Notes under the pieces: generated by a model
The model's database searches: none
The model's input: only the letters and a program-made list of their open reading frames with translations
What the model was told of the DNA's origin: nothing
Sequence record: NC_026927.1
DNA length: 64,000 nt
Direction: 5' to 3' (one strand)
Position numbers and translations under genes: made by a program
Shown: positions 10,889 to 24,737 of the stretch, piece by piece
Layout: the number at the start of each line of letters is the position of its first letter
Numbering within the stretch: position 1 is the stretch's first letter

Positions 10889-12190
10889 ATGGCAGCATTA
10901 AGTTCCACTTCCCCAGGACAACTAGGTAAGTATGTCATCCCCACAGTCCAGAAACTAAATGATGCGATGAAACGCAGAACTAGTCTTGGTAGGGGGAGTG
11001 GTAAGTCTTATACCATTAAGAATACCCCTGCGAATGTGGCAGCTATCAAGGAGTTCTCTCGCATTGGTAGCTCCCCCAAGTCACAGAAAGAAGCACTTGC
11101 TATTAGTCTGCAGACCACTGATACTAAAGTTCCTACTATTACTATCGGCAGTATTGATAAACCTAATATCAAATACAACCTTGGAGATATGTCCGAGGCT
11201 GTAGTTGGTGCTGCTATTGCTGCCAGGTTTATCTACAAGAATAGAAGTATTACGACTTCAAATGTTTATGGTGTTCTATATGGAATGCCACCATCATCTA
11301 ACTACCCAGGGAAGAAGGGAAAATATACAGAGAAGACATTCCAGTCAGTTAATGAAAATAAGAAGGTTACAGATCAAGTTAAGGTGTATATCTCCTTAGC
11401 TGAGGTTAATATGGCTGCTGTGATGGATAGATCCAATAAGGATCTTATTCTTCCTTATGTTCGTTCTGCAGTCAGATATGCCAATAGTACTACTGTTAAG
11501 AAGTGGTCCAAACTACTTTATGAGAACAATAGATCAGATAAGATTGATGTAATGTCCGATGGTCTTGGAGGACAAACCACAACTAAAGTGGATGTATATG
11601 TAAAAGTTAATGATGAGAAAGTAAATATTAATGTGTCACTGAAGGCTGGTGATGTCAAACAGTTTGGTCAGGTCTCTGGTATTGAGTTTGAGAAACAAAC
11701 TAAACTATGGGAAACCTCCTTTGGTTTTGGTAGTGAGATTAAGAGTCTAGAGTCAAAGTATAACCAGTTGATCTCAGATAAATCAACAGTCCCACAGGCT
11801 GTAACTATGGTGTATCAAGAGGTGGCTAACCTTTTTAATCAAGGTATTAAGAGAGGTGATGCTGGTATGATAAGGAAATTTGCCAACTCCATTAAGTATT
11901 TTGCTACACTAAATGAAGACAATGTAACCCTACTACAGGTGGGTAATGATGCAGCAAAGCTCTATTCGTTTGATGATATATACCAAGGAATAGAAAACAT
12001 GCAACTGAACGCTTCTATTACTATGGGTAAGAGTGGTCTCCCAACCTTACTAATAAACGAGACTGCTAGTGGGCAACCTCTTATTCAGTATCGAGTGAAG
12101 CAGGAGTTCAAACCCGATGGGTCTCCATACATCAGAAACTATGTGGAGAAGCAGACTGTTCTAGGAAAACTTATTGGTGAAAACCTCTAG
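10889..12190 (+). CDS. hypothetical protein, possible PD-(D/E)xK-type nuclease
   Basis: 433 aa; GDMSE...TKVDV...VSLK spacing resembles a PD-(D/E)xK core. Confidence 0.45.
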   Translation: MAALSSTSPGQLGKYVIPTVQKLNDAMKRRTSLGRGSGKSYTIKNTPANVAAIKEFSRIGSSPKSQKEALAISLQTTDTKVPTITIGSIDKPNIKYNLGDMSEAVVGAAIAARFIYKNRSITTSNVYGVLYGMPPSSNYPGKKGKYTEKTFQSVNENKKVTDQVKVYISLAEVNMAAVMDRSNKDLILPYVRSAVRYANSTTVKKWSKLLYENNRSDKIDVMSDGLGGQTTTKVDVYVKVNDEKVNINVSLKAGDVKQFGQVSGIEFEKQTKLWETSFGFGSEIKSLESKYNQLISDKSTVPQAVTMVYQEVANLFNQGIKRGDAGMIRKFANSIKYFATLNEDNVTLLQVGNDAAKLYSFDDIYQGIENMQLNASITMGKSGLPTLLINETASGQPLIQYRVKQEFKPDGSPYIRNYVEKQTVLGKLIGENL

Positions 12191-12202
12191 GTGTGTTATA
12201 AT
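12174..12202 (+). promoter_or_regulatory. sigma70-type promoter for the first DNA methyltransferase
   Basis: TTGGTG-17nt-TATAAT with TGTG extension. Confidence 0.55.
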
Positions 12203-12225
12203 ACCATTGTAGAGATTTCTATTTT

Positions 12226-13125
12226 ATGAAGGAACGCAGAAAGTATCCAACCGTATTGAGGTATCCAGGCGGTAAGTCTAGGATTATCTACTATTTGTTT
12301 AGGGAAAATATGATCCCTAAGAATGTCAAGGAATACCGTGAGGGTTTCCTAGGTGGGGGTTCTTGTGCTCTTGCGTTCTCTGTGATGTACCCAAACACCC
12401 CAGTTTGGGTCAATGATCTTTACTACAATCTGTATATCTTCTGGACACAACTCCAGAAGAATCCAGATCCACTCATCAATCGTCTCCTAGAACTAAAGGA
12501 CGAAGCCTGTGATGCATCGGGTACAGAAGAACTAGAGAAAAAGCATAGAAAACTCTACACAGATATGCGTGATCTCATTAATACTTCTAGTGATCACCTT
12601 GATATTGCAACCTCCTTCTACATTCTAAACCGATCTAGTTTCGGTGGATTCACTGAACAAAACAAGAATGCCTTCATCCGAGACTCATACAAGAATACTA
12701 TTTTCTCTCAGAGTAAAATCCGTAAGTTGGCTAATATCTCTGAGATTATCCAACCCTGGAGAATTACCAATACACACTACAAGGAACTAATGAGAGCTCC
12801 TGGTGATGATGTATTTGTGTTCCTAGACCCTCCATATCTAATCAAGGATATGTTGTATGGTAAGGACAAGGAGATGCACACTGGGTTCTCTCATGAAGAG
12901 TTTGTGAGTGAGTGTAAAGGTTCTACACATGACTGGATGATTACCTACAATGAACATGAATGGTTGAGATCCCAGTTCGCTGACTATCATATGGAGTCTT
13001 TCGAGTTCCGTTATAGTCTCGCCCACAGGGAAGAGAATGGCAACAAGAAAGAAGAACTCCTCATAATGAACTATGAGATTCCTCGTGATATCCCAAACCC
13101 ACTAGAGGTAGTTTTGTATGGATGA
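12226..13125 (+). CDS. dam: Dam-like (D12 class) N6-adenine DNA methyltransferase
   Basis: LRYPGGKSR, EGFLGGGS, VNDL, FLDPPY, WMITYN. Confidence 0.9.
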   Translation: MKERRKYPTVLRYPGGKSRIIYYLFRENMIPKNVKEYREGFLGGGSCALAFSVMYPNTPVWVNDLYYNLYIFWTQLQKNPDPLINRLLELKDEACDASGTEELEKKHRKLYTDMRDLINTSSDHLDIATSFYILNRSSFGGFTEQNKNAFIRDSYKNTIFSQSKIRKLANISEIIQPWRITNTHYKELMRAPGDDVFVFLDPPYLIKDMLYGKDKEMHTGFSHEEFVSECKGSTHDWMITYNEHEWLRSQFADYHMESFEFRYSLAHREENGNKKEELLIMNYEIPRDIPNPLEVVLYG

Positions 13126-13573
13126 TCTAGAGCTAGAGTATCATCTTTATCTGGATGGAAACCCTATTCAGACACTGAAGGATGACGCTAGTACAATGAC
13201 TTTAGCCAAGAAGAGAGTTATCGGTCCTTACATTCGTAGAGCTGAATCTTTTATTAAAATATCAGAACCATTTAGGGAACTACTTCGTCTTGATGATGGT
13301 AAGGATAAACTTCTAGATGCAATAGGTGTTGTCTGGGCACACTACTTTGAACATAAGATTAACAAGAAGTATATGGTTATCCCTAAGGATGCATCTCTTG
13401 ATTTTATGGAATACTTTGGTACTATGGCACAGAAGGATAAGTTTCCAGATGATAAATATATTAAGAAAGCTCAGCGTATCATTCTCTCTCACGAAAAGAG
13501 TATTGATGCTTTCATTAAGGCTTTTCATAGTATCCGTTTAGCCAACGACAAATATCTCTCCCTGAAGAAATGA
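13118..13573 (+). CDS. hypothetical protein
   Basis: 151-aa ORF overlapping both neighbours. Confidence 0.7.
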   Translation: MDDLELEYHLYLDGNPIQTLKDDASTMTLAKKRVIGPYIRRAESFIKISEPFRELLRLDDGKDKLLDAIGVVWAHYFEHKINKKYMVIPKDASLDFMEYFGTMAQKDKFPDDKYIKKAQRIILSHEKSIDAFIKAFHSIRLANDKYLSLKK

Positions 13574-16248
13574 TCACACCGAAGTCCCTACTATCATTCC
13601 TATCTGAAGCCGCTGATTCTGAGGCTGCACAACAGGCTAAGGAGATGGGTTTAACCTCTGCCGGTTATGGTAACTGGAGAGACAGGTCGGGCAATGTTGT
13701 TGCCAAAACTGTAGATGGTCAGTTGGTGATGATTGACGCCAAGGCAGACCCTATGGCTAGACCGGCGGCACCTGAGGAGGAAATGCCACCTGAAGAGGAG
13801 GAGGAGCCCCAGTTTGTAGAACCAGATCCAGATATGGTTGAGAAAGTAGCTAAGGGTCTTTCTGGTGGTAGATATAATATTGCATCAGCACAGAGGAAGA
13901 AAGAGTTACTGGCTTCTGCTAGACAGATACTAATCAATAAACAGATCCAAGACGCTCAGATGCAGGCTGACGCTGAGGCTCAGGCAGCGGCACAGAACCC
14001 ACCAGAACCCACTCCAGAGGAGTTGGCACAACAACAGGCGGATATGGAACTACAGCAACAGAACGCTGTGATGGATACTGAACTGAAGGCACAGAGTGTA
14101 GAGAATGGGAAACTGGACCTTCAGATGAAGAAGGACCAGATGAAGCAACAGAAGGAGGCAGAGAAAGAAGCCAAGGCTATGGATAAACTAGCCAAGAAAG
14201 CAGAGGCACAGAAACAAGCAGAAGCAGAAGCCGCAGCTCCTCCACCAATGCCACAGGGTGTCGCCCCCGATGCACCACCACTTCCTGAAGAAGAGATGGT
14301 TGTACCTGATGAACTGGATGCCCTGCTTGGAGCTATTAGGGGTGGTAATGAGAAGAAGACTAGTTCTGTTCTAGGTAAAATTCAGAAGAAAATTGGTAAG
14401 AAATCTGCTCCAAAGGCAAAAGCAAAACCCAAAAAGACACCTAAAGTTCAGACAGATCGAAGAATACCTGTTGCGGCTGTCGATAGAACAGATGTCCCGC
14501 AGTTTCAATCTGAAGCCCTAAGTCAGATGAATGCATATCTATCCGAAAATAGACAGAGAGAGGAGGATGATTACTATAGGGGTGCAGCAATTGAGGCTGT
14601 GCGTGAGCAACACGGTGAGGCTTTCTATTACTTTGATGAACCAAATGGTGTTGTAACAGAAATCAACACCCCACAGGGTGCTGCTGACCTAATGGAGTGG
14701 TCAACTAATAGCTCTAACAAACTAATTGGTAAGTCCCTGAAACCTTTTTGGAAAGAAGTTGATAACTTCCATAACAACTGGGCAGATCCTGAACTCCGTG
14801 ACGAGAATAACTACGAACAAATCATCGAAGTTACTCGCCCAAACCGAGGAAAGATACCTGATTCTGTAGTAGATTCTGAATGGAAGAAACTAAAGAATGC
14901 AGAGAGGAAGCAACTAGCTGAAATGGGTCTAGGTGGTGCTGGTGGTCGTGCTAATATGTTTCTAAAGACCGATAAGGATAGGGAGAAGAGGGGTAAATCT
15001 ATCCTTAAGGTGTATCTAGAACAGGGCGGTCGAGATGCCTGGTTGGGTTCTTCTGACACTAACCCTATTAGTTGGAAGGATATGACTGTCGATCATGTTC
15101 ATTCTGAGGGTGATGTTCAGTTCTGGCAAGCCGAATGTGTCAAGAGGGGTATGGATCCTAAGGATTATCAGGCTTTGGCTAATGATCCAGAAGTTAACTA
15201 TGTTATGACTCGTTTTGGATTCAATGGAGCTCAGAAGAGGGACAACTCCATGGATAAACTATACACTGAAATGGAGAAGAAGTATTACTCTAAAGGTAAG
15301 AATGAAGTTGATAGTCTTACTAGAGGTAATGCTGAGAAGAAGATGAGGAAGCAACTTAGGGAACAAGAATATTATGCTCCCCTAGTTCAGAATCTTAAGG
15401 CGGCAGTTCAGTCTGGCAATTTTACCCCAGAAGTTTATAATGAACTATTTGATACTTATAAGAAAGGTAGGTCTGAACTTGAGACATCTAACGGTCCTAG
15501 AACTGATCGTTCTCAGATGATTATGGGACGTAATGAATCTACCGATCCTTGGAGATCTCTTGCTGAAAGATCACTATTTGGTTATAAGATCTTTGCTGGT
15601 GATGGTCTCCGTGCCAAGAAAGGTGGTCAGATTGCTGGTTGGTCTGGTGTCGGTGGAACTACCAGTGGTTCTAATGCGGCTGATGGTGAAGCTCCTTCAT
15701 ATCCCTTCGAGGATACTGCTATGGACTTCTACTTCGATCCTATTCGGAGAATGGCACTATCCAGTCCAGAGAATCAAAAAAAGGCAGATTCTATCCACAA
15801 ATACACTCAGTTTATGGGTAACGCCTTTGTTACTGGTAAGATTGGATCTCAAGAATGGCACAACTATCTAACCCAGTCTTCACAGATGATGCATGAGATG
15901 CTTCCTGATGAGTGGAAAGGTGAGTATGAGGCGGAACGGGGACAGGAATACCTATCAACAATTAATAGAACTCTAAACAAACTCAATAAGGGTCAGGATG
16001 ATCTTGAGGGTGATAATTATGCGCCCGATCGTAATATCACTGAACTTTTTAAGAACTCACCACAGAAGAGTTTAGCTGATCAGGGTATTGAAATTATGAG
16101 ATCTATGATGGATCCAGAGAACTTCAATGCGGTTGACTACTATGATCGTGGTAATCTTTATGAAGGTTTCGAAAATCTTGGGTTGTTATCTGGTAGAGGT
16201 GATGTTATAATGGAGAGGTTCCAAAATAAGAGAAGGAATGAAATTTGA
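13570..16248 (+). CDS. 892-aa modular protein: FLSEA N-terminal module, Q/E/A/P-rich linker, putative His-Me (HNH-like) nuclease region
   Basis: N-terminus shared with ORF 18791; central GGRDAW...MTVDHV...NYV...FNG.QK pattern. Confidence 0.6.
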   Translation: MITPKSLLSFLSEAADSEAAQQAKEMGLTSAGYGNWRDRSGNVVAKTVDGQLVMIDAKADPMARPAAPEEEMPPEEEEEPQFVEPDPDMVEKVAKGLSGGRYNIASAQRKKELLASARQILINKQIQDAQMQADAEAQAAAQNPPEPTPEELAQQQADMELQQQNAVMDTELKAQSVENGKLDLQMKKDQMKQQKEAEKEAKAMDKLAKKAEAQKQAEAEAAAPPPMPQGVAPDAPPLPEEEMVVPDELDALLGAIRGGNEKKTSSVLGKIQKKIGKKSAPKAKAKPKKTPKVQTDRRIPVAAVDRTDVPQFQSEALSQMNAYLSENRQREEDDYYRGAAIEAVREQHGEAFYYFDEPNGVVTEINTPQGAADLMEWSTNSSNKLIGKSLKPFWKEVDNFHNNWADPELRDENNYEQIIEVTRPNRGKIPDSVVDSEWKKLKNAERKQLAEMGLGGAGGRANMFLKTDKDREKRGKSILKVYLEQGGRDAWLGSSDTNPISWKDMTVDHVHSEGDVQFWQAECVKRGMDPKDYQALANDPEVNYVMTRFGFNGAQKRDNSMDKLYTEMEKKYYSKGKNEVDSLTRGNAEKKMRKQLREQEYYAPLVQNLKAAVQSGNFTPEVYNELFDTYKKGRSELETSNGPRTDRSQMIMGRNESTDPWRSLAERSLFGYKIFAGDGLRAKKGGQIAGWSGVGGTTSGSNAADGEAPSYPFEDTAMDFYFDPIRRMALSSPENQKKADSIHKYTQFMGNAFVTGKIGSQEWHNYLTQSSQMMHEMLPDEWKGEYEAERGQEYLSTINRTLNKLNKGQDDLEGDNYAPDRNITELFKNSPQKSLADQGIEIMRSMMDPENFNAVDYYDRGNLYEGFENLGLLSGRGDVIMERFQNKRRNEI
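16183..16211 (+). promoter_or_regulatory. internal sigma70-type promoter for the NPPY methyltransferase
   Basis: TTGTTA-17nt-TATAAT with TG extension inside the 3' end of the upstream gene. Confidence 0.5.
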
Positions 16249-17143
16249 TGTTGTTATTGGCAACCCCCCATATCAGAATCCTGATGGTGTAAAGAACAAG
16301 AAGATCTGGTTATCTTTCTTTGATCTTGGTGTCTCCCTCCTAAAGAAGGGTGGCACTATGTGTTACATCACGCCCACCACTCACTTCTGGAGTTTGGGTA
16401 GAAAGTGGCAAACTGGTGTGTCTGCTGATATTCTACTGAAACAGAACAACCTTCGTAGTGTAGATTTCACTACATCCAAACACTTCCCACAGGTTGGTGA
16501 CTATATTTGTAACTATGTTCTACGCAAAGAACCTCCCAGTGGTATGGTAGATGTTATTGAGAAAGATGGGACAGAGGTTCTACGCCCACATGATGATGTC
16601 TATGATTGTGATGAGGAGAGACAAAAGGCAAAGTTCTTCTCTGCTATGAGAGAACTACGAGAGAAGTATGGGAAGTATCATATTCCCCACGACACAAGAG
16701 ATAAGAGTCATTATAGTCAGACACAGGAGGGCGTGTATCAGCATCCTACTTATATTTCGGCAGCAAAACAGATATGGTATGCTGACAGTCCTACACTAGG
16801 GACTGATACACTGAAGATTATTATGAATATGTCTTCCTACTTCTGGAATATCAATGATACTCAGAAGTATATGAGGATTGATTCAGGTCCTGGTGTTGGG
16901 TTATTGGGAAGAATGTTGGCAATTGATAGTGTGAAGGATGGTGAGAAGATAGTTGAGTACCTAACTTCACCACTAGTGAAGTTCTACATTGACTGTATGA
17001 AGAGGACATCCCCATGGAACCACGCGATGTATCAGTTACCAAAGTGTCACCATATGACAGAGAGTGAGATCCTAGATGAGATGGGTTGGACTAGAGACCA
17101 GTTTGAAGAAATGTATCCAGAACGTCTGGAAACCAAAGTATAG
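16238..17143 (+). CDS. N6-adenine DNA methyltransferase-like protein (NPPY motif at the extreme N-terminus)
   Basis: FDVVIGNPPYQ...LLKKGG.MCYITP; no FxGxG motif I upstream of NPPY. Confidence 0.7.
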   Translation: MKFDVVIGNPPYQNPDGVKNKKIWLSFFDLGVSLLKKGGTMCYITPTTHFWSLGRKWQTGVSADILLKQNNLRSVDFTTSKHFPQVGDYICNYVLRKEPPSGMVDVIEKDGTEVLRPHDDVYDCDEERQKAKFFSAMRELREKYGKYHIPHDTRDKSHYSQTQEGVYQHPTYISAAKQIWYADSPTLGTDTLKIIMNMSSYFWNINDTQKYMRIDSGPGVGLLGRMLAIDSVKDGEKIVEYLTSPLVKFYIDCMKRTSPWNHAMYQLPKCHHMTESEILDEMGWTRDQFEEMYPERLETKV

Positions 17144-17197: not shown

Positions 17198-18079
17198 ATG
17201 GTGAAACCCCTGTTTAAGTGGACTGGTGGAAAGGGGCGACTATTCCAGAAGTATCAAGATCTAAACTTCTTCCCAGAGGCAGACAGGTTCGACACATTTG
17301 TTGACCTGTTTTTTGGTGCTGGGTCAGTCACCCTTTGGGTTGCGGAGAAGTATCCAGATAAGAAACTCATTATTAATGATAAGAACACGGAACTTATGGG
17401 GTTATATACCCAAATACGTGATAACTGGGGTGAGTTTAGTGAGCACTATAAGAGAGTGTATAACGTATTCCTAGACACCCCAATAGAGAAAAGAAAGGCA
17501 CTCTATAACTGTTATAAGAAGAGATATGCATGGAACTATAAGTGGTTGTCAGAAGCAGAGATTGCGGCAAACCTCTTGGTTATGATGAAGATTAACTTCA
17601 ATGGTATTTGGTTAGCGTATAAGATGTATGGTCGTAGGTATTCTACGGCACCAGGGAAGATTGATTATAAAGAAAGTATCTTTGGTATGGAGAATGTGGA
17701 ACAGTTCCGTCAAGTCCTACTACGGGCAACACTCTACAATAGATCCTTTGAGGATGTTCCTATTCCTGATAACTCCTGGGTATTTGCTGATCCACCATAC
17801 AGAGACACCAGAGATATGTATTCCGATACATTCACCGATGAACTTCAGTCTAAACTGGCAAAGTTCATAGTTTCTACAGACGGACTATACTGTGAGTCTA
17901 ATAAAGAAACTGGTGATGGTTTCTGGGGAGAACACTTCCCTATGGAGAACATCCACTTCACAGATCACAAATACACTTGTGGTTATGGGGGATCCATTAA
18001 CCCAGTCACTGAAGTTCTTATAAAGAACTATGGGAATAATATCCCACAACCAACTACCCTTGATTCCTTTTTTAACTGA
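17198..18079 (+). CDS. dam: Dam-like (D12 class) N6-adenine DNA methyltransferase
   Basis: KPLFKWTGGK, DLFFGAGSV, IINDKN, FADPPY. Confidence 0.88.
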   Translation: MVKPLFKWTGGKGRLFQKYQDLNFFPEADRFDTFVDLFFGAGSVTLWVAEKYPDKKLIINDKNTELMGLYTQIRDNWGEFSEHYKRVYNVFLDTPIEKRKALYNCYKKRYAWNYKWLSEAEIAANLLVMMKINFNGIWLAYKMYGRRYSTAPGKIDYKESIFGMENVEQFRQVLLRATLYNRSFEDVPIPDNSWVFADPPYRDTRDMYSDTFTDELQSKLAKFIVSTDGLYCESNKETGDGFWGEHFPMENIHFTDHKYTCGYGGSINPVTEVLIKNYGNNIPQPTTLDSFFN

Positions 18080-18081
18080 TT

Positions 18082-18774
18082 ATGCAAAAGAAAAACCGTA
18101 TCTCCCACGAAGAAGAAATTAAACTATGTCGTCAGGCACAACTACAAGATCATACATCCAAGTATGCTATGACTAAAATGGTTAGTGCTAATATTGGGTT
18201 GGTTGAGAAACTCGCTAACAAACTCTACATCAAGAATGATCAATACTCTTTCGATGATCTATACCAGGAGGGTGTATTTGGTCTTATCAGAGGTGTGAAT
18301 AAGTTTGATCCTGCTGTTGGATGTAGGTTCTCCACCTATTCCTACTACTGGATTTATAGTTATATTATGAGGTATTGTGAGAATAACCTAGGTAAGATCC
18401 GTATTCCCACTCACCTCCGTGAGAAAATGAGGAAACAGAAAGATAATAAAACAGAGTTAGATAGACTAAAGTCCAAAGTCCCGTCAGTAGTATCATTAAA
18501 TACAATAGTGGGTGAATCACTATCCTTGGATAATGTAGTTACATACACCGAGAATATCTCATTTGATGATGAGATGGAACATGTTTTGGTTGTTATGGAT
18601 GAGGTTTTGGATGAAAGAGAACACCAGGTTCTCTGTAGTAGGTTTGGTATTGGTGGTGAGAAACCTCTATCACAAAGAGAGTGTGCCAAACTACACAATG
18701 TTACCCATGGTGCTATCTATTTGATTGAGAAGAAATCAATCAAGAAAATCAAACACCATATGGGTTATAAATAA
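18082..18774 (+). CDS. sigma70-family RNA polymerase sigma factor
   Basis: region 1.2 SHEEEIKL, 2.1 ANIGLV, 2.2-2.3 DLYQEGVFGLIRGVNKFDP..G.RFSTYS, IRIP, region 4 LDEREHQVL..RFG.GG. Confidence 0.88.
   Translation: MQKKNRISHEEEIKLCRQAQLQDHTSKYAMTKMVSANIGLVEKLANKLYIKNDQYSFDDLYQEGVFGLIRGVNKFDPAVGCRFSTYSYYWIYSYIMRYCENNLGKIRIPTHLREKMRKQKDNKTELDRLKSKVPSVVSLNTIVGESLSLDNVVTYTENISFDDEMEHVLVVMDEVLDEREHQVLCSRFGIGGEKPLSQRECAKLHNVTHGAIYLIEKKSIKKIKHHMGYK
18766..18773 (+). promoter_or_regulatory. T4-type late promoter
   Basis: TATAAATA upstream of ORF 18791. Confidence 0.7.
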
Positions 18775-18790
18775 TACTATAGTAGATTCT

Positions 18791-20005
18791 ATGGCGATGA
18801 GATCGTTTCTAACATTCCTAACCGAAGCCCGTTCTCGTGCATCTAAAAGAGCCAAAGAGTTGGGACTCACTGGCAATGGTCACGGTGGATGGGAAGATAA
18901 CGAAGGTAACCTAGTCGCCATGACGGTGAAGGGTGATCTGGAGTTTGTGAAGGGAAGAGAACCCAAAGAGGAAGAAGAACCCGATGAAAAGACTTCTGCC
19001 CCTGAAGAGGAACCAACATCCAACAAAGCGCCTGGGGTAGATCCAGAGAACACAGATACTCCAAGACAGAAAGAACCAGCGCCTGTTCCCAAAGATAAGG
19101 GTATTCTAACTGTTGCTTTCGGTAGGTTTAACCCTCCTACGATTGGACATGAGAAACTAATCAATACTGTAGCATCATATTCAGAGAACGGTGATTACAT
19201 AATCATTCCCTCTAGGAGTGAGGATAAGAAGAAGAACCCTTTAGATATCGACACTAAAGTTAGTATCATGAGGCAGATGTATCCAACACACGCCGAGAAG
19301 ATTGTTAACGATCCACATAATAGAACCATCTTTGATGTTATGCGTAAGGCGCATAATGATGGTTACGCTGGTATTAGGATTGTTGGTGGTGGAGATAGAG
19401 TTAAGGAATATGAGAAGTTAGCCAACGCATATAACGGATCTACCTATCAGTTTGATGAAATTGATGTAGTAAACGCTGGTGACAGGGATCCAGATGCGGA
19501 AGGTGCAGAAGGTATGTCTGCCTCCAAGATGAGAAAGGCGGCAGCTGATAATGACTTTGCTTCCTTCAGAAAAGGAATGCCAAAGACTCTCAGTAACGAT
19601 CAGATGGTTTCTATCTACACTCAGGTTCAGAAGTCTATGGGTGTAACACCTAAGGAAGCTGTAATTGAAAACTGGAAAGTTGCTCCTAGACTGTATCCAC
19701 AGGAACTGAGAGAGGCTTATATCCAAAACGAAATCTATAATATTGGTGATACTGTCAGTCATGACACCACTGGTATGGTAGGTAAGATCGTAAGAAAGGG
19801 AACCAATCACCTCATTTGTGTAACAGAAAGTGAGGAAATGTTCAAGACCTGGACACAGGATGTTAGTCCCGCAGATCTAAAACCACAACCAGCAATCTCT
19901 ACTCCAAAGGAGAGGGAAGTTGGAACAGATTCCCTTAGATCTTTCCTTCAGAGGATCACTCCAGGAGAGAAAGAGCAATCCTTTATAAATAAACATAAGA
20001 AATAA
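18791..20005 (+). CDS. cytidylyltransferase-like (HxGH nucleotidyltransferase) protein with FLTEA N-terminal module
   Basis: TVAFGRFNPPTIGHEKL, IVGGGDR, AGDRDPD, MSASKMR; start moved to ATG 18791. Confidence 0.85.
   Translation: MAMRSFLTFLTEARSRASKRAKELGLTGNGHGGWEDNEGNLVAMTVKGDLEFVKGREPKEEEEPDEKTSAPEEEPTSNKAPGVDPENTDTPRQKEPAPVPKDKGILTVAFGRFNPPTIGHEKLINTVASYSENGDYIIIPSRSEDKKKNPLDIDTKVSIMRQMYPTHAEKIVNDPHNRTIFDVMRKAHNDGYAGIRIVGGGDRVKEYEKLANAYNGSTYQFDEIDVVNAGDRDPDAEGAEGMSASKMRKAAADNDFASFRKGMPKTLSNDQMVSIYTQVQKSMGVTPKEAVIENWKVAPRLYPQELREAYIQNEIYNIGDTVSHDTTGMVGKIVRKGTNHLICVTESEEMFKTWTQDVSPADLKPQPAISTPKEREVGTDSLRSFLQRITPGEKEQSFINKHKK
19984..19991 (+). promoter_or_regulatory. T4-type late promoter
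   Basis: TATAAATA upstream of ORF 20025. Confidence 0.7.
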
Positions 20006-20024: not shown

Positions 20025-21521
20025 ATGGATTTCAACGTAACCGAAGCTGTCGAGCTAATCGTATTGTTAGCCGAGACAGAACAGCTAACACTACAAGATG
20101 CTCTACAGGAGTTCCTATCAGAGACCGAGTTGGACTCTGAAACGGCATCCCATCTAAAGGGTGCCCTCTTTGAGAAATATTCACTCAGAGAGATGGCGAC
20201 TGACGCCGTAACAAACGCTATGATGAAAGTGTTTGTTAGTCGTCCAGTAGTAGAAGAGGAAGTGGAGACTCCTGATGGTAATCTCTACTTTGTAGAGGTT
20301 GAATTAGAGGAGGAAGTTCTAGAAGGTTATCTAACCCTAGAAGAAATCCAGAATATGAGAGTGGATGCTGATGTTCTATCCGTTAAGTTAGTTGATGAAG
20401 GTGTTCGTGACACTGACGCCGAGAAAGGAACAGAGGAAAGAAAGAAACGCCTTGAGAAGAAGCGTGGAATGAAGTTGGACGACCATCCTCAGTATCTGGA
20501 AACAGATATGAAGAAGCGTCAGGAGAATAACGAGAAGGCTCGTAAGGATATGGATAAAGTGAAGGGTCAGAAGAATCCTCACTTCGAAGAGTATGATATT
20601 TCTGAAGGTCGCAAAGAAGGTGAGTCTTCTAAAGATTACGCCGATAGAATGACTAAGAAGTATTCTGGTGGTAAGTCTAAGTCCTATGATCCCATGAAGG
20701 ATAAGAACTTCGACCATGACAAGGCAGAAAGAACCCGTGGTTCTATGGAAGAAGGTCTAGATGCCGTAGGTGGCGAAGACGCTGACATTAATAACGATAA
20801 TAAGGTTGATAAGACTGATAAGTATCTACACAATCGTCGTAAGGCTATCGGAAAGGCGATGAAGAAGGAATCAGCTTGGGCTGAGTATCTAAATCGTAGA
20901 GGAATCTCTGAGGAAGTATTCTCTGAAGGTGACCTAATCGACGCAGGTCGTAAGAATGAGGGAGAACGAAAGGGAAAAAAGATTACCGGGGAGGGTGTTG
21001 ATAACTCCTCCTCTGTGAAGTTGATGCCCCGTATCGCTGAAGCCGCTATCATCACTGAGAAGTCAGAGAGTAAGTCACAACAGCGTCTCTTTGGTATGGT
21101 AAGAGCAGCTCAGAAGGGTGAGAAACCCGCCTCTGGTAAGGTTGCTGAACTAGCTTCTAAGGTTGGTAAGAAAGACGTTCTAGACTTCGCTAAGACAAAA
21201 CACAAGGGTTTGAAAGAGAACTGTTGTGATAAGTGTGGCACTCCTGATTGTACTTGTGATGAGAAGCCCAAGTCTAAGAAAAAGAAAGCTAAACTAGATG
21301 AAGCAGGGATGCCTATTCTAGAGTATTCTAGAAACAACGCTGAAGGTCCTACACCTGAAATGATTGATCCTCCAAAGGATGAAGAAGGTAAGAAGGGTGT
21401 AAAGAACCCTAAAGGTAAGGCTAAGAGACCTGGTGCAGGTGACAGAAGACCTAACGACGGTGGTTCCGAACTACCATTCGATATGGGAACCGTACCCGGT
21501 GGTGGCGGTTGTGGTTGCTAA
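20025..21521 (+). CDS. charged low-complexity late protein, probable virion or prohead internal protein
   Basis: 498 aa, K/E-rich, repeated hydrophobic-X-E motifs; late promoter upstream. Confidence 0.6.
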   Translation: MDFNVTEAVELIVLLAETEQLTLQDALQEFLSETELDSETASHLKGALFEKYSLREMATDAVTNAMMKVFVSRPVVEEEVETPDGNLYFVEVELEEEVLEGYLTLEEIQNMRVDADVLSVKLVDEGVRDTDAEKGTEERKKRLEKKRGMKLDDHPQYLETDMKKRQENNEKARKDMDKVKGQKNPHFEEYDISEGRKEGESSKDYADRMTKKYSGGKSKSYDPMKDKNFDHDKAERTRGSMEEGLDAVGGEDADINNDNKVDKTDKYLHNRRKAIGKAMKKESAWAEYLNRRGISEEVFSEGDLIDAGRKNEGERKGKKITGEGVDNSSSVKLMPRIAEAAIITEKSESKSQQRLFGMVRAAQKGEKPASGKVAELASKVGKKDVLDFAKTKHKGLKENCCDKCGTPDCTCDEKPKSKKKKAKLDEAGMPILEYSRNNAEGPTPEMIDPPKDEEGKKGVKNPKGKAKRPGAGDRRPNDGGSELPFDMGTVPGGGGCGC

Positions 21522-23756: not shown

Positions 23757-24737
23757 ATGGATTTTGTTGATTCCAAGTTCATAAGTCTAGTATCCTCTCG
23801 CTTAGAGAAGTTCAAACAGAAGAAGTCTGACCTGTATAACTGCAGGTGTCCCATTTGTGGAGACTCTTCTAGGAACCGAACTAAAGCGAGGGGATATATT
23901 TATGCAGTGAAACAAAATACAAACTACAAATGCCACAACTGTGGTGTGAGTATGTCATTCTCTAACTTCCTGAAGGAGATAGATCCAGTATTACATAAGC
24001 AATATGTCTTTGAGAAGTTCAAGGGAAAGAACTCTACGCCCATCAAGAACGTTAAGTCAGTTCTGGATAAGTTTTCCTACGAACCCAAGTTCAAGAAGAA
24101 GACAAAGATTGATTTGCCCTCCGCCTTTGATGTAAAACTATCTAAGGAGTATCTGGATAACAGAAAGATTACCTCTGGGGAGTTTTATTACACAGATAAC
24201 TTCAAAGAGTTTGTGAATGTAATCAAACCAAGAACGTTTGATGACGAACGTGGGGGACCTAGAATTGTAATTCCCCTGTATGACAGGGATGGTGTATTGT
24301 TTGGGTTACAGGGAAGATCTCTTCTCCCCAGTAAGGTTAAATACATCACAATCATCCTTGATGAAGACCAACCAAAAGTGTATGGTTTGGAGAAAATAGA
24401 CCCCACACAGAGGGTTTATCTAGTGGAAGGTCCTTTCGATTCCACATTCATAAATAACTCACTCGCTATGTGTGGTGCTGATGTAGTATTAGATACACTG
24501 GGACTACAAGAACTAGTATATGTGTACGATAACGAACCTCGTAACAGGGAGATCTGCAATAGGATCAATAAAGTTATCGATCAGGGTAAGAAGGTTGTTA
24601 TTTTCCCCACAAATATAGAACAAAAGGACATCAATGATATGATCTTAGCAGGGCATGATATAATGACTGTATTGGGATCCAATGTCTACCAAGGACTAAC
24701 TGCTAAAATTAAGTATAACGAATGGAAAAGATTATGA
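23757..24737 (+). CDS. gp61: DNA primase
   Basis: Zn finger CRCPICGDS...CHNC; TOPRIM VEGPFDS, YDNEPRN, KDINDM. Confidence 0.95.
   Translation: MDFVDSKFISLVSSRLEKFKQKKSDLYNCRCPICGDSSRNRTKARGYIYAVKQNTNYKCHNCGVSMSFSNFLKEIDPVLHKQYVFEKFKGKNSTPIKNVKSVLDKFSYEPKFKKKTKIDLPSAFDVKLSKEYLDNRKITSGEFYYTDNFKEFVNVIKPRTFDDERGGPRIVIPLYDRDGVLFGLQGRSLLPSKVKYITIILDEDQPKVYGLEKIDPTQRVYLVEGPFDSTFINNSLAMCGADVVLDTLGLQELVYVYDNEPRNREICNRINKVIDQGKKVVIFPTNIEQKDINDMILAGHDIMTVLGSNVYQGLTAKIKYNEWKRL

Follow-up and report, generated by a model that had tools for sequence, protein, structure and literature searches.

What does a marine cyanophage do with a protein of 892 amino acids whose gene overlaps that of a DNA methyltransferase? 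We analysed a stretch of 64,000 nucleotides, referred to here as the window, from Synechococcus phage ACG-2014f (NC_026927; Kyanoviridae, genus Atlauavirus), in which each position equals the position in the NC_026927 record minus 124,000. The open reading frame (ORF) at 13570-16248 on the plus strand encodes 892 amino acids that are 100% identical to gp190 of ACG-2014f, and a match to phrog_3561 spans the full length of the protein. The original prediction was that this protein might be a nuclease packaged in the virion and co-injected with methylated phage DNA. Our results suggest that gp190 is cargo of the phage head, namely an injected HNH nuclease against which the phage DNA would be protected by a split methylase, and we assign a probability of about 0.55 to this joint reading because its separate steps support one another. 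A nuclease gene with a methylase as its neighbour implies that the phage probably injects a nuclease that spares its own DNA. The parts of gp190 and the gene that overlaps its end are as follows.

13570..16248, plus strand: gp190 gene (phrog_3561), with tag, hairpin-like module, low-complexity linker and HNH-containing body
13570..13608, plus strand: capsid-targeting-like propeptide MITPKSLLSFLSE, with a predicted prohead-protease cut after Glu13 (L-S-E/A; here and below a slash marks the cut)
13648..13728, plus strand: conserved hairpin-like module GLTSAGYGNWRDRSGNVVAKTVDGQLV, residues 27-53, from sequence comparison
13747..14466, plus strand: low-complexity A/K/E/Q/P linker, residues 60-299, from composition and allele comparison
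14467..16245, plus strand: conserved, mostly helical body, residues 300-892, from an AlphaFold2 model
15007..15240, plus strand: Cas9-type (HNH_4-like) HNH core, residues 480-557, YLEQGGRDAW...TVD508-H509...N543YVMTRFGFN552GAQK556
16238..17143, plus strand: gp191, Eco57I-like N6-adenine methyltransferase, catalytic and target-recognition half (motifs IV-VIII)

The N-terminus of gp190 consists of MITPKSLLSFLSE followed, after the predicted cut, by AADS, and in the register of phage T4 shifted by 3 residues it reads K5-S-L7-L-S-F10-L11-S-E13/A14. The N-termini of the T4 internal proteins IPII and IPIII, read from NC_000866, are MKTYQEFIAE/A, and genetic work in T4 assigned capsid targeting to residues 4 and 7 and processing to residues 8 and 10 (PMC9026906). 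The tag pattern of the cyanophage proteins, MKxF4xxF7L8xE10, keeps exactly these genetically mapped positions, as the following starts illustrate.

S-CREM2 gp6 (S-adenosylmethionine (SAM) lyase): MKDFDSFLEE
S-CREM2 gp13: MKDLHSFLTE
S-CREM2 gp14 (kinase): VKRFDAFLTE
S-CREM2 gp154 (cytidylyltransferase): MKNFSSFLTE
S-SCSM1 NMNAT: MKSFLQFLKE/A
cytidylyltransferase of the window, counted from Met3: MRSFLTFLTE/A
gp190, in register after 3 extra residues: MIT-PKSLLSFLSE/A

Exactly one [ILM]-x-E was found within the first 33 residues in 9/9 divergent members of the gp190 family, a pattern for which the chance expectation is about 8e-5 if the sequences are assumed to be independent. In addition, ACG-2014f encodes a gp21-type prohead protease (PF03420 match at NC_026927:103494-103946, E 4.6e-34). 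The tag pattern is not perfectly specific, because the homolog of the gp61 primase (window 23952-24737; NC_026927:147952) starts with MSFSNFLKE and fits its loose form, which is probably a chance match. Our literature searches found no paper that links a capsid targeting sequence (CTS) to cyanophages. A reading of the gp190 N-terminal motif as a sliding-clamp-binding peptide was dropped in favour of a CTS after the association with virion proteomes described below had emerged.

Proteins with the same tag are present in the virions of related phages. Mass spectrometry of purified S-CREM2 virions identified 52/221 proteins (PMC10665884 Table 3). We scanned the genome of this phage with the strict tag pattern at every candidate start codon in six frames and obtained 6 matches, 5 of which are true starts of coding sequences (gp6, gp13, gp14, gp136 and gp154). 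All 5 of these encode virion-detected proteins (hypergeometric p = 6e-4). A sixth non-structural virion protein of S-CREM2, gp12, carries the tag after a 16-residue extension and was detected with 28 unique peptides and 27% coverage (PMC10665884). Of the two tag-bearing proteins in S-SCSM1, only one carries a virion-protein flag. The NMNAT of S-SCSM1 has been seen in virions (PMC9602691); its ortholog in the window, the cytidylyltransferase, is 47% identical to it and has an N-terminal module 52% identical to that of gp190 (E 9e-11). At the level of homology, the most direct link from the locus to the virion is provided by allele C, one of the alternatives to gp190 in the same phage population, which is 86% identical to gp190 across the first 272 residues and whose body shows full-length homology to S-CREM2 gp12 (E 3e-62). 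The T4 register, together with virion mass spectrometry of proteins with the same tag, thus supports the T4-like capsid-targeting N-terminus that had been predicted for gp190, and gp190 is probably packaged by means of this T4-type tag.

The 45 ACG-2014f genomes in GenBank contain at least four alleles at the position of gp190. Allele A, that of the window, has 892 amino acids and occurs in 19 records; allele B has 953 amino acids and a body that is about 25% identical to that of A. Allele C (980 amino acids; at least 12 records among those listed) shares its first ~270 residues with gp190 and continues into an unrelated body, and allele D (796 amino acids; 2 records) shares the first ~205 residues and has a different body again. 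The linker is constant among the alleles of the population up to about residue 205-270, and an HNH-like D/E-H…N…N core is kept in every allele body. The long linker that had been noticed in the sequence is clear from composition, as 60% of residues 60-299 are Q, E, A, P or K, versus 31% in the body. The internal proteins of T-even phages have been described in reviews in a similar way, with a constant tag and swapped cargo (PMC3012670), and by analogy the constant tag and linker with exchanged cargo at the gp190 locus mirrors these proteins.

An alternative is that gp190 and gp191 form an unpackaged, cytoplasmic cassette of a selfish or restriction-modification (R-M) kind whose expression follows infection; the N-terminal motif would then have a different role, and the virion detections in relatives would reflect carry-over of abundant proteins. 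Several observations speak for this alternative or weigh against packaging. First, the proteins detected in virions are those of S-CREM2 and S-SCSM1 rather than gp190 itself, and the authors of the S-CREM2 study warned that abundant proteins may contaminate CsCl-purified virions (PMC10665884). Second, the tag of gp190 begins 3 residues past the canonical register and that of S-CREM2 gp12 16 residues past it. Third, gp190 is surrounded by genes of replication and nucleotide metabolism, not by structural genes, and no perfect late promoter lies directly 5' of it, the nearest approach being the one-mismatch GATAAATA at 13451. Fourth, a sigma70-like extended -10 element, TGTTATAAT, occurs at window 12190-12226 upstream of the Dam-like methylase gene and may serve as an early or host-type promoter of an operon made up of this gene, a 151-residue ORF, gp190 and gp191. 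However, carry-over does not readily account for the detection of all five proteins with a true tag-bearing start in S-CREM2, nor for the fact that the tag positions kept are those that are genetically important in T4. The T4 genes ipI, ipII and ipIII likewise lie outside the structural module, and the tag and linker have remained constant in four alleles while the body was exchanged. On this evidence, an unpackaged cassette appears quite unlikely.

Two further observations concern tag-bearing proteins of the relatives. S-SCSM1 gp030 (L058:1216-1536) is a protein of 106 amino acids that starts with MKTFKQFMSE, 7/10 identical to MKTFKEFTST of T4 IPI; it lies between two virion-protein genes beside the terminase gene, is not flagged as a virion protein and may be a small internal protein. 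Three genes form a conserved set (L004:5381-10343; L010, S-CREM2 gp14-gp13-gp12) and encode a kinase-like protein of ~755-783 amino acids with tag and module, a tag protein of 78 amino acids and an HNH protein. Because each of the S-CREM2 products is among the virion-detected proteins, this trio looks like a head-cargo operon.

The second question is whether the body of gp190 is a nuclease. The protein contains the motifs GGRDAW (486), TVDHV (506; His509) and NYVMTRFGFNGAQK (543-556). In an alignment of 8 sequences with identity down to 26%, H509, N543, R548, G550 and N552 are invariant, with either Asp or Glu at position 508. The residue pattern of an HNH active site, a His preceded by Asp/Glu plus one structural and one metal-binding Asn, is present as D508-H509, N543 and N552. 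The order YLEQGGRDAW … TVDH … NYVMTRFGFNGAQK follows that of the Cas9-type HNH (SpCas9), including the 9-residue Asn-Asn spacing. A deeper alignment was impossible because the family is very small, with 6 proteins found by word search and 13 among 1.84 billion representatives. The confident AlphaFold2 model of residues 300-892 (predicted local distance difference test (pLDDT) 79, predicted template modelling score (pTM) 0.68) consists mostly of helices, and the DH and NYVMT segments form two short strands; in the model of the HNH domain, these strand segments are followed by a short helix. When the body model was compared with all PDB representatives, the HNH region (model 128-274, residues 427-573) matched Cas9 HNH domains exclusively (chains 7enh, 8d2k, 7mpz and 4oge; Z about 4), and the body outside the HNH part matched no known fold. 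The HNH domain folded alone also gave a pLDDT of 79, and 37/48,161 chains matched this model at Z >= 2 (best Z 3.8). Over half of these were HNH or His-Me nucleases, including Cas9, IscB, PtuB, retron HNH, GVE2, Gme, McrA, Cap5 and TagI as well as VcaM4I, T4 endonuclease VII and CAD. The nine best Foldseek rows for the domain model were all SpCas9, at a non-significant E of about 1. The HNH/His-Me core proposed from the sequence is thus supported by catalytic residues that do not vary and by the predominance of HNH nucleases in the fold-search lists.

A competing explanation holds that gp190 is a structural or pilot protein of the head with a degenerate, inactive HNH, whose helical body organises or ejects DNA. 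It draws on the observations that more than 450/593 body residues are helical with no known fold, that zinc-binding cysteines are absent and that the Pfam HNH models remain below threshold. The Pfam search of gp190 itself returned zero matches, and the family gave only sub-threshold scores: 17.9 bits for HNH (cut-off 21.4) and 14.7 for HNH_4 (cut-off 22) in the short member P0016, and 20 bits for GmrSD_C (cut-off 23) in member P0008. Sequence searches of the PDB with gp190 alone and with the family profile yielded nothing but low-complexity or irrelevant matches, Foldseek with the 593-residue body model nothing but helical-repeat noise, and the ESM Atlas search with gp190 residues 575-892 no usable match. 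Every individual structural match to an HNH domain is also weak (Z <= 3.8, Foldseek E about 1); because each single match is weak, the fold evidence is supportive, not decisive, and the invariant catalytic residues weigh more than the fold matches. These residues argue against a structural role: D/E508, H509, N543, N552 and K556 are kept down to 26% identity and recur in alleles C and D, whose bodies are otherwise unrelated. Cas9-type HNH domains likewise lack the Cys4 zinc site, and the swapping of bodies within one phage population is not expected of a structural protein. A structural protein with a dead HNH is thus highly improbable, and we consider it likely, from the motif and the models, that gp190 is an active HNH nuclease.

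The third question is what would protect the DNA of the phage. The gp191 ORF (16238-17143), whose first 11 nt lie within the 3' end of gp190, starts with MKFDVVIGNPPYQ. Its product begins with FDVVIGNPPY, that is, strand β4 and motif IV, with NPPY at residues 9-12, and matches the Eco57I family (PF07669) of gamma-class N6-adenine DNA methyltransferases with E 2.7e-12 at profile positions 73-169 of 171. The methylase ORF starts at motif IV in every relative, and the SAM-binding motifs X and I-III are found neither in the gp191 polypeptide nor in its relatives. Motif X (GEVFTP), motif I (FLDNSAGxGNFL) and motifs II and III are instead carried by a separate protein of 121-147 amino acids, whose gene lies directly 3' of the catalytic half in L004, L006, L007, L019 and L021 and just 5' of the nuclease gene in L020. 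In ACG-2014f, this SAM-binding half is gp051 (NC_026927:35896-36300), about 100 kb from gp191. The gene of gp051 and that of the catalytic half occur in the same 26/45 ACG-2014f records, and gp051 is absent from the other 19. Because the SAM-binding half is separate and is found in the same 26/45 records, the adjacent methyltransferase is one subunit of a split enzyme that assembles in trans; judged by its motifs, gp191 is the catalytic and target-recognition subunit. Alleles B and D are accompanied by two different catalytic halves, which suggests that one SAM-binding subunit may serve several target-recognition subunits.

Two other explanations of the incomplete methylase were ruled out. The C-terminus of gp190 (…VDYYDRGNLYE) is not the missing SAM-binding half, given the separate conserved protein with motifs X and I-III, and a frameshift fusion of gp190 and gp191 is contradicted by the 27 nt that separate the two genes in L004 and the overlap of just 1 nt in L006. 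We also noted that gp051 is followed by gp052, gp053 and gp054 (NC_026927:35896-39843; L014:4897-8844), which look like a second R-M-like cluster: gp052 has 200 amino acids and a PD-(D/E)xK-like motif seen by eye, gp053 is a complete Eco57I-like methylase of 393 amino acids in which the starting sequence of gp191, MKFDVVIGNPPYQ, occurs internally and unchanged, and gp054 is a superfamily 2 (SF2) helicase.

The association of the nuclease gene with the catalytic half is conserved. An Eco57I-like catalytic half lies 3' of the nuclease gene in 10/10 distinct loci with a body of type A, B or D, with at most one other methylase gene in between and often with overlapping genes. These loci are the window, L004/L005, L006, L007, L019, L020, L021, allele B (L008), P0009 and allele D (L059), where P0009 (type B-like) was counted with allele B and contigs carrying the same protein were counted once. 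The pattern resembles the pairing of restriction with modification or of toxin with immunity. The co-occurrence of the two genes across cyanophage loci that the original prediction called for was therefore found. Of its claim that gp190 is coupled to a methyltransferase, the gene order and the 11-nt overlap stand, while the adjacent gene proved to encode half an enzyme, with the SAM-binding half ~100 kb away.

This association bears on a further alternative, in which gp190 is likewise packaged and injected as an HNH protein but leaves host DNA alone and acts on the incoming DNA of the phage itself or on nucleic acids of host defence, for instance through nicking, processing of ends or destruction of defence components, the methylases being ordinary protection against host R-M systems. 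The tag and the virion evidence speak equally for both explanations, and in T4, IPI and other internal proteins counteract restriction (PMC9026906). The locus also contains two Dam-like methylases unrelated to the nuclease, and the region as a whole is rich in methylases, so the linkage could in part be that of a shared anti-restriction island. In addition, allele C and S-CREM2 gp12 are without an Eco57I-like methylase, which means either that the nuclease has no strict need of this partner or that it relies on the Dam-like methylases common to all alleles. What this alternative leaves unexplained is the half-methylase 3' of the nuclease in 10/10 loci, down to ~25% identity and often overlapping, an arrangement typical of toxin-immunity or R-M pairs. 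We regard it as unlikely, and protection by the split methylase combined with attack on unmodified DNA as having, by analogy with such pairs, slightly better than even odds.

Under the mechanism that we propose, the tag (…L-x-x-F-L-x-E/A) would anchor gp190 on the prohead scaffolding core before being cleaved off after Glu13 by the gp21-type prohead protease. The mature protein of ~100 kDa, consisting of module, flexible linker and helical HNH body, would leave the head with the DNA and, inside the cell, would cut DNA without the phage methylation, whether of the host, a prophage or a competitor. An N6-adenine methyltransferase composed of gp191 and gp051 would protect the phage DNA, with gp191 presumably translationally coupled to gp190. 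The locus would then behave as an arms-race cassette in which the tag and linker stay constant and the nuclease body is exchanged together with the methylase half or halves. We put forward only tentatively, as a possibility that falls well short of even odds, that this amounts to an 'offensive restriction-modification' with capsid-loaded, swappable HNH nucleases, each matched to interchangeable catalytic halves with a single SAM-binding subunit, encoded elsewhere in the genome, in common. If so, the nuclease would be injected ahead of gene expression, and the alleles of nuclease and methylase half would represent mutually incompatible 'restriction types' within one phage population, which could determine how a co-infection ends and how fast host DNA is destroyed.

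The genes around gp190 and gp191 are listed here.

12226..13125, plus strand: D12-class (Dam-like) adenine methyltransferase, constant across all alleles
13118..13573, plus strand: ORF of 151 amino acids (phrog_3417) that overlaps both neighbours and lies upstream of all four alleles
17198..18079, plus strand: second D12-class adenine methyltransferase, constant across all alleles
18766..18773, plus strand: T4-type late-promoter motif TATAAATA, 18 nt 5' of the cytidylyltransferase start
18791..20005, plus strand: cytidylyltransferase/NMNAT-like gene with tag and hairpin-like module

In public records gp190 is labelled 'cytitidyltransferase'. This label is wrong; it arose because ~55 N-terminal residues are common to gp190 and to the real cytidylyltransferase/NMNAT-like gene (18791-20005). 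The shared module after the tag, GLxxxGxGxWxDxxGNxVAxTVxGxL, lies at window 18860-18950 in the cytidylyltransferase gene; it is also present in S-CREM2 gp12, the gp14 kinase, the L004 kinase and two Xanthomonas phages (BUDD and X1) and is absent from the other tag-bearing proteins. The linker of gp190 ends in the motif PDELDALLGAIRGG (residues 246-259, window 14305-14346). This linker-body junction motif, P-(D/x)-(E/G)-LD-x-LL-x-x-(I/L)-x-G, was seen in alleles A and C, S-CREM2 gp12, P0004, P0005, P0006 and P0008 and may serve in docking or as a second site of processing. The late-promoter motif TATAAATA has 8 copies in the window, versus 3.6 expected, all on the plus strand (18766, 19984, 21934, 47771, 56777, 57542, 58761 and 60899), and three of them lie directly 5' of the cytidylyltransferase gene and of the following genes for 498 and 268 amino acids. 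The locus is flanked by genes for proteins of 433 amino acids (phrog_3560; 10889-12190) and 498 amino acids (20025-21521), and the latter has short, highly similar segments in common with the S-SCSM1 'virion proteins' gp089 and gp280. Further head cargo may be encoded in this region.

If gp190 is indeed packaged, the capsid-targeting rule of T4 would extend to marine cyanophages, and head cargo (a nuclease, an NMNAT-like enzyme, a kinase and a SAM lyase) would become predictable from sequence alone, which would explain the recurrent 'non-structural' proteins in cyanophage virion proteomes. The 10-residue tag would be a possible tool for loading foreign proteins into cyanophage heads. The presence of four alleles in one natural population points to strong diversifying selection, and this diversity bears on competition between phages and on the turnover of host DNA in the ocean. 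Two public annotations are corrected by our analysis, that of gp190 as 'cytitidyltransferase' and that of S-CREM2 gp12 as 'Cas9'.

Among known systems, the T4 proteins IPI, IPII, IPIII and Alt share with gp190 the register of the propeptide (hydrophobic residues at 4 and 7, L/I at 8, Glu at 10, then Ala), a gp21-type protease, diverse cargo behind a conserved tag and genes outside the structural module. Unlike the small, basic T4 internal proteins of 8-20 kDa, gp190 would be a ~100-kDa HNH protein with a 240-residue flexible linker and an extra hairpin-like module; its tag is offset by 3 residues. Large effectors of phages and plasmids, the polyvalent proteins, often with nuclease or methylase domains, are predicted to be packaged and injected early with the DNA (Iyer et al. 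2017, PMC5512222), and gp190 resembles them as a large protein that is proposed to be packaged and injected. It differs from them in having one recognisable catalytic domain, with the methylase as a separate gene product, and in that its packaging would use a T4-type CTS instead of fusion to MuF, portal or virion RNA polymerase (vRNAP).

The core of gp190 is similar to the HNH of Cas9 (HNH_4) in the order Y-L-x-Q-x-G-x-D-x-Y ... D-H ... N-x-V-x-T-R ... N-x-x-x-K, in the 9-residue spacing between the two Asn and in the lack of Cys4, and it differs in an insertion of ~33 residues between DH and the first Asn and in being embedded in a novel helical body. Only the HNH region of gp190 matches Cas9, no other Pfam family was matched, and the annotated flanks are free of Cas9-type and other CRISPR-associated genes. 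Nor is S-CREM2 gp12 a Cas9, despite its annotation as 'CRISPR-associated endonuclease Cas9/Csn1 (virion protein)': a RuvC domain, a REC lobe and CRISPR are all absent. It shares with gp190 the N-terminal tag and module, the linker-end motif and the HNH-like core; the two bodies are not detectably similar outside the HNH motif, and gp12 is followed by a small 'restriction endonuclease' gene, not by an Eco57I-like half-methylase.

The closest functional precedent is, by analogy, provided by the packaged restriction enzymes of chloroviruses. Chlorovirus virions (PBCV-1) carry the restriction enzyme without the methylase encoded beside it, and degradation of host DNA sets in within minutes of infection (PMC7019647). 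As in these viruses, a virus-encoded nuclease gene adjoins a methyltransferase gene at the gp190 locus, and the proposed logic is the same. In contrast to chloroviruses, which are giant viruses of eukaryotes with small, classical type II enzymes, ACG-2014f belongs to the T4-like phages, and it encodes a large HNH protein with a CTS-like tag together with a methylase in two pieces. If our interpretation is correct, gp190 would be the first phage counterpart of the packaging of a restriction enzyme in the chlorovirus virion.

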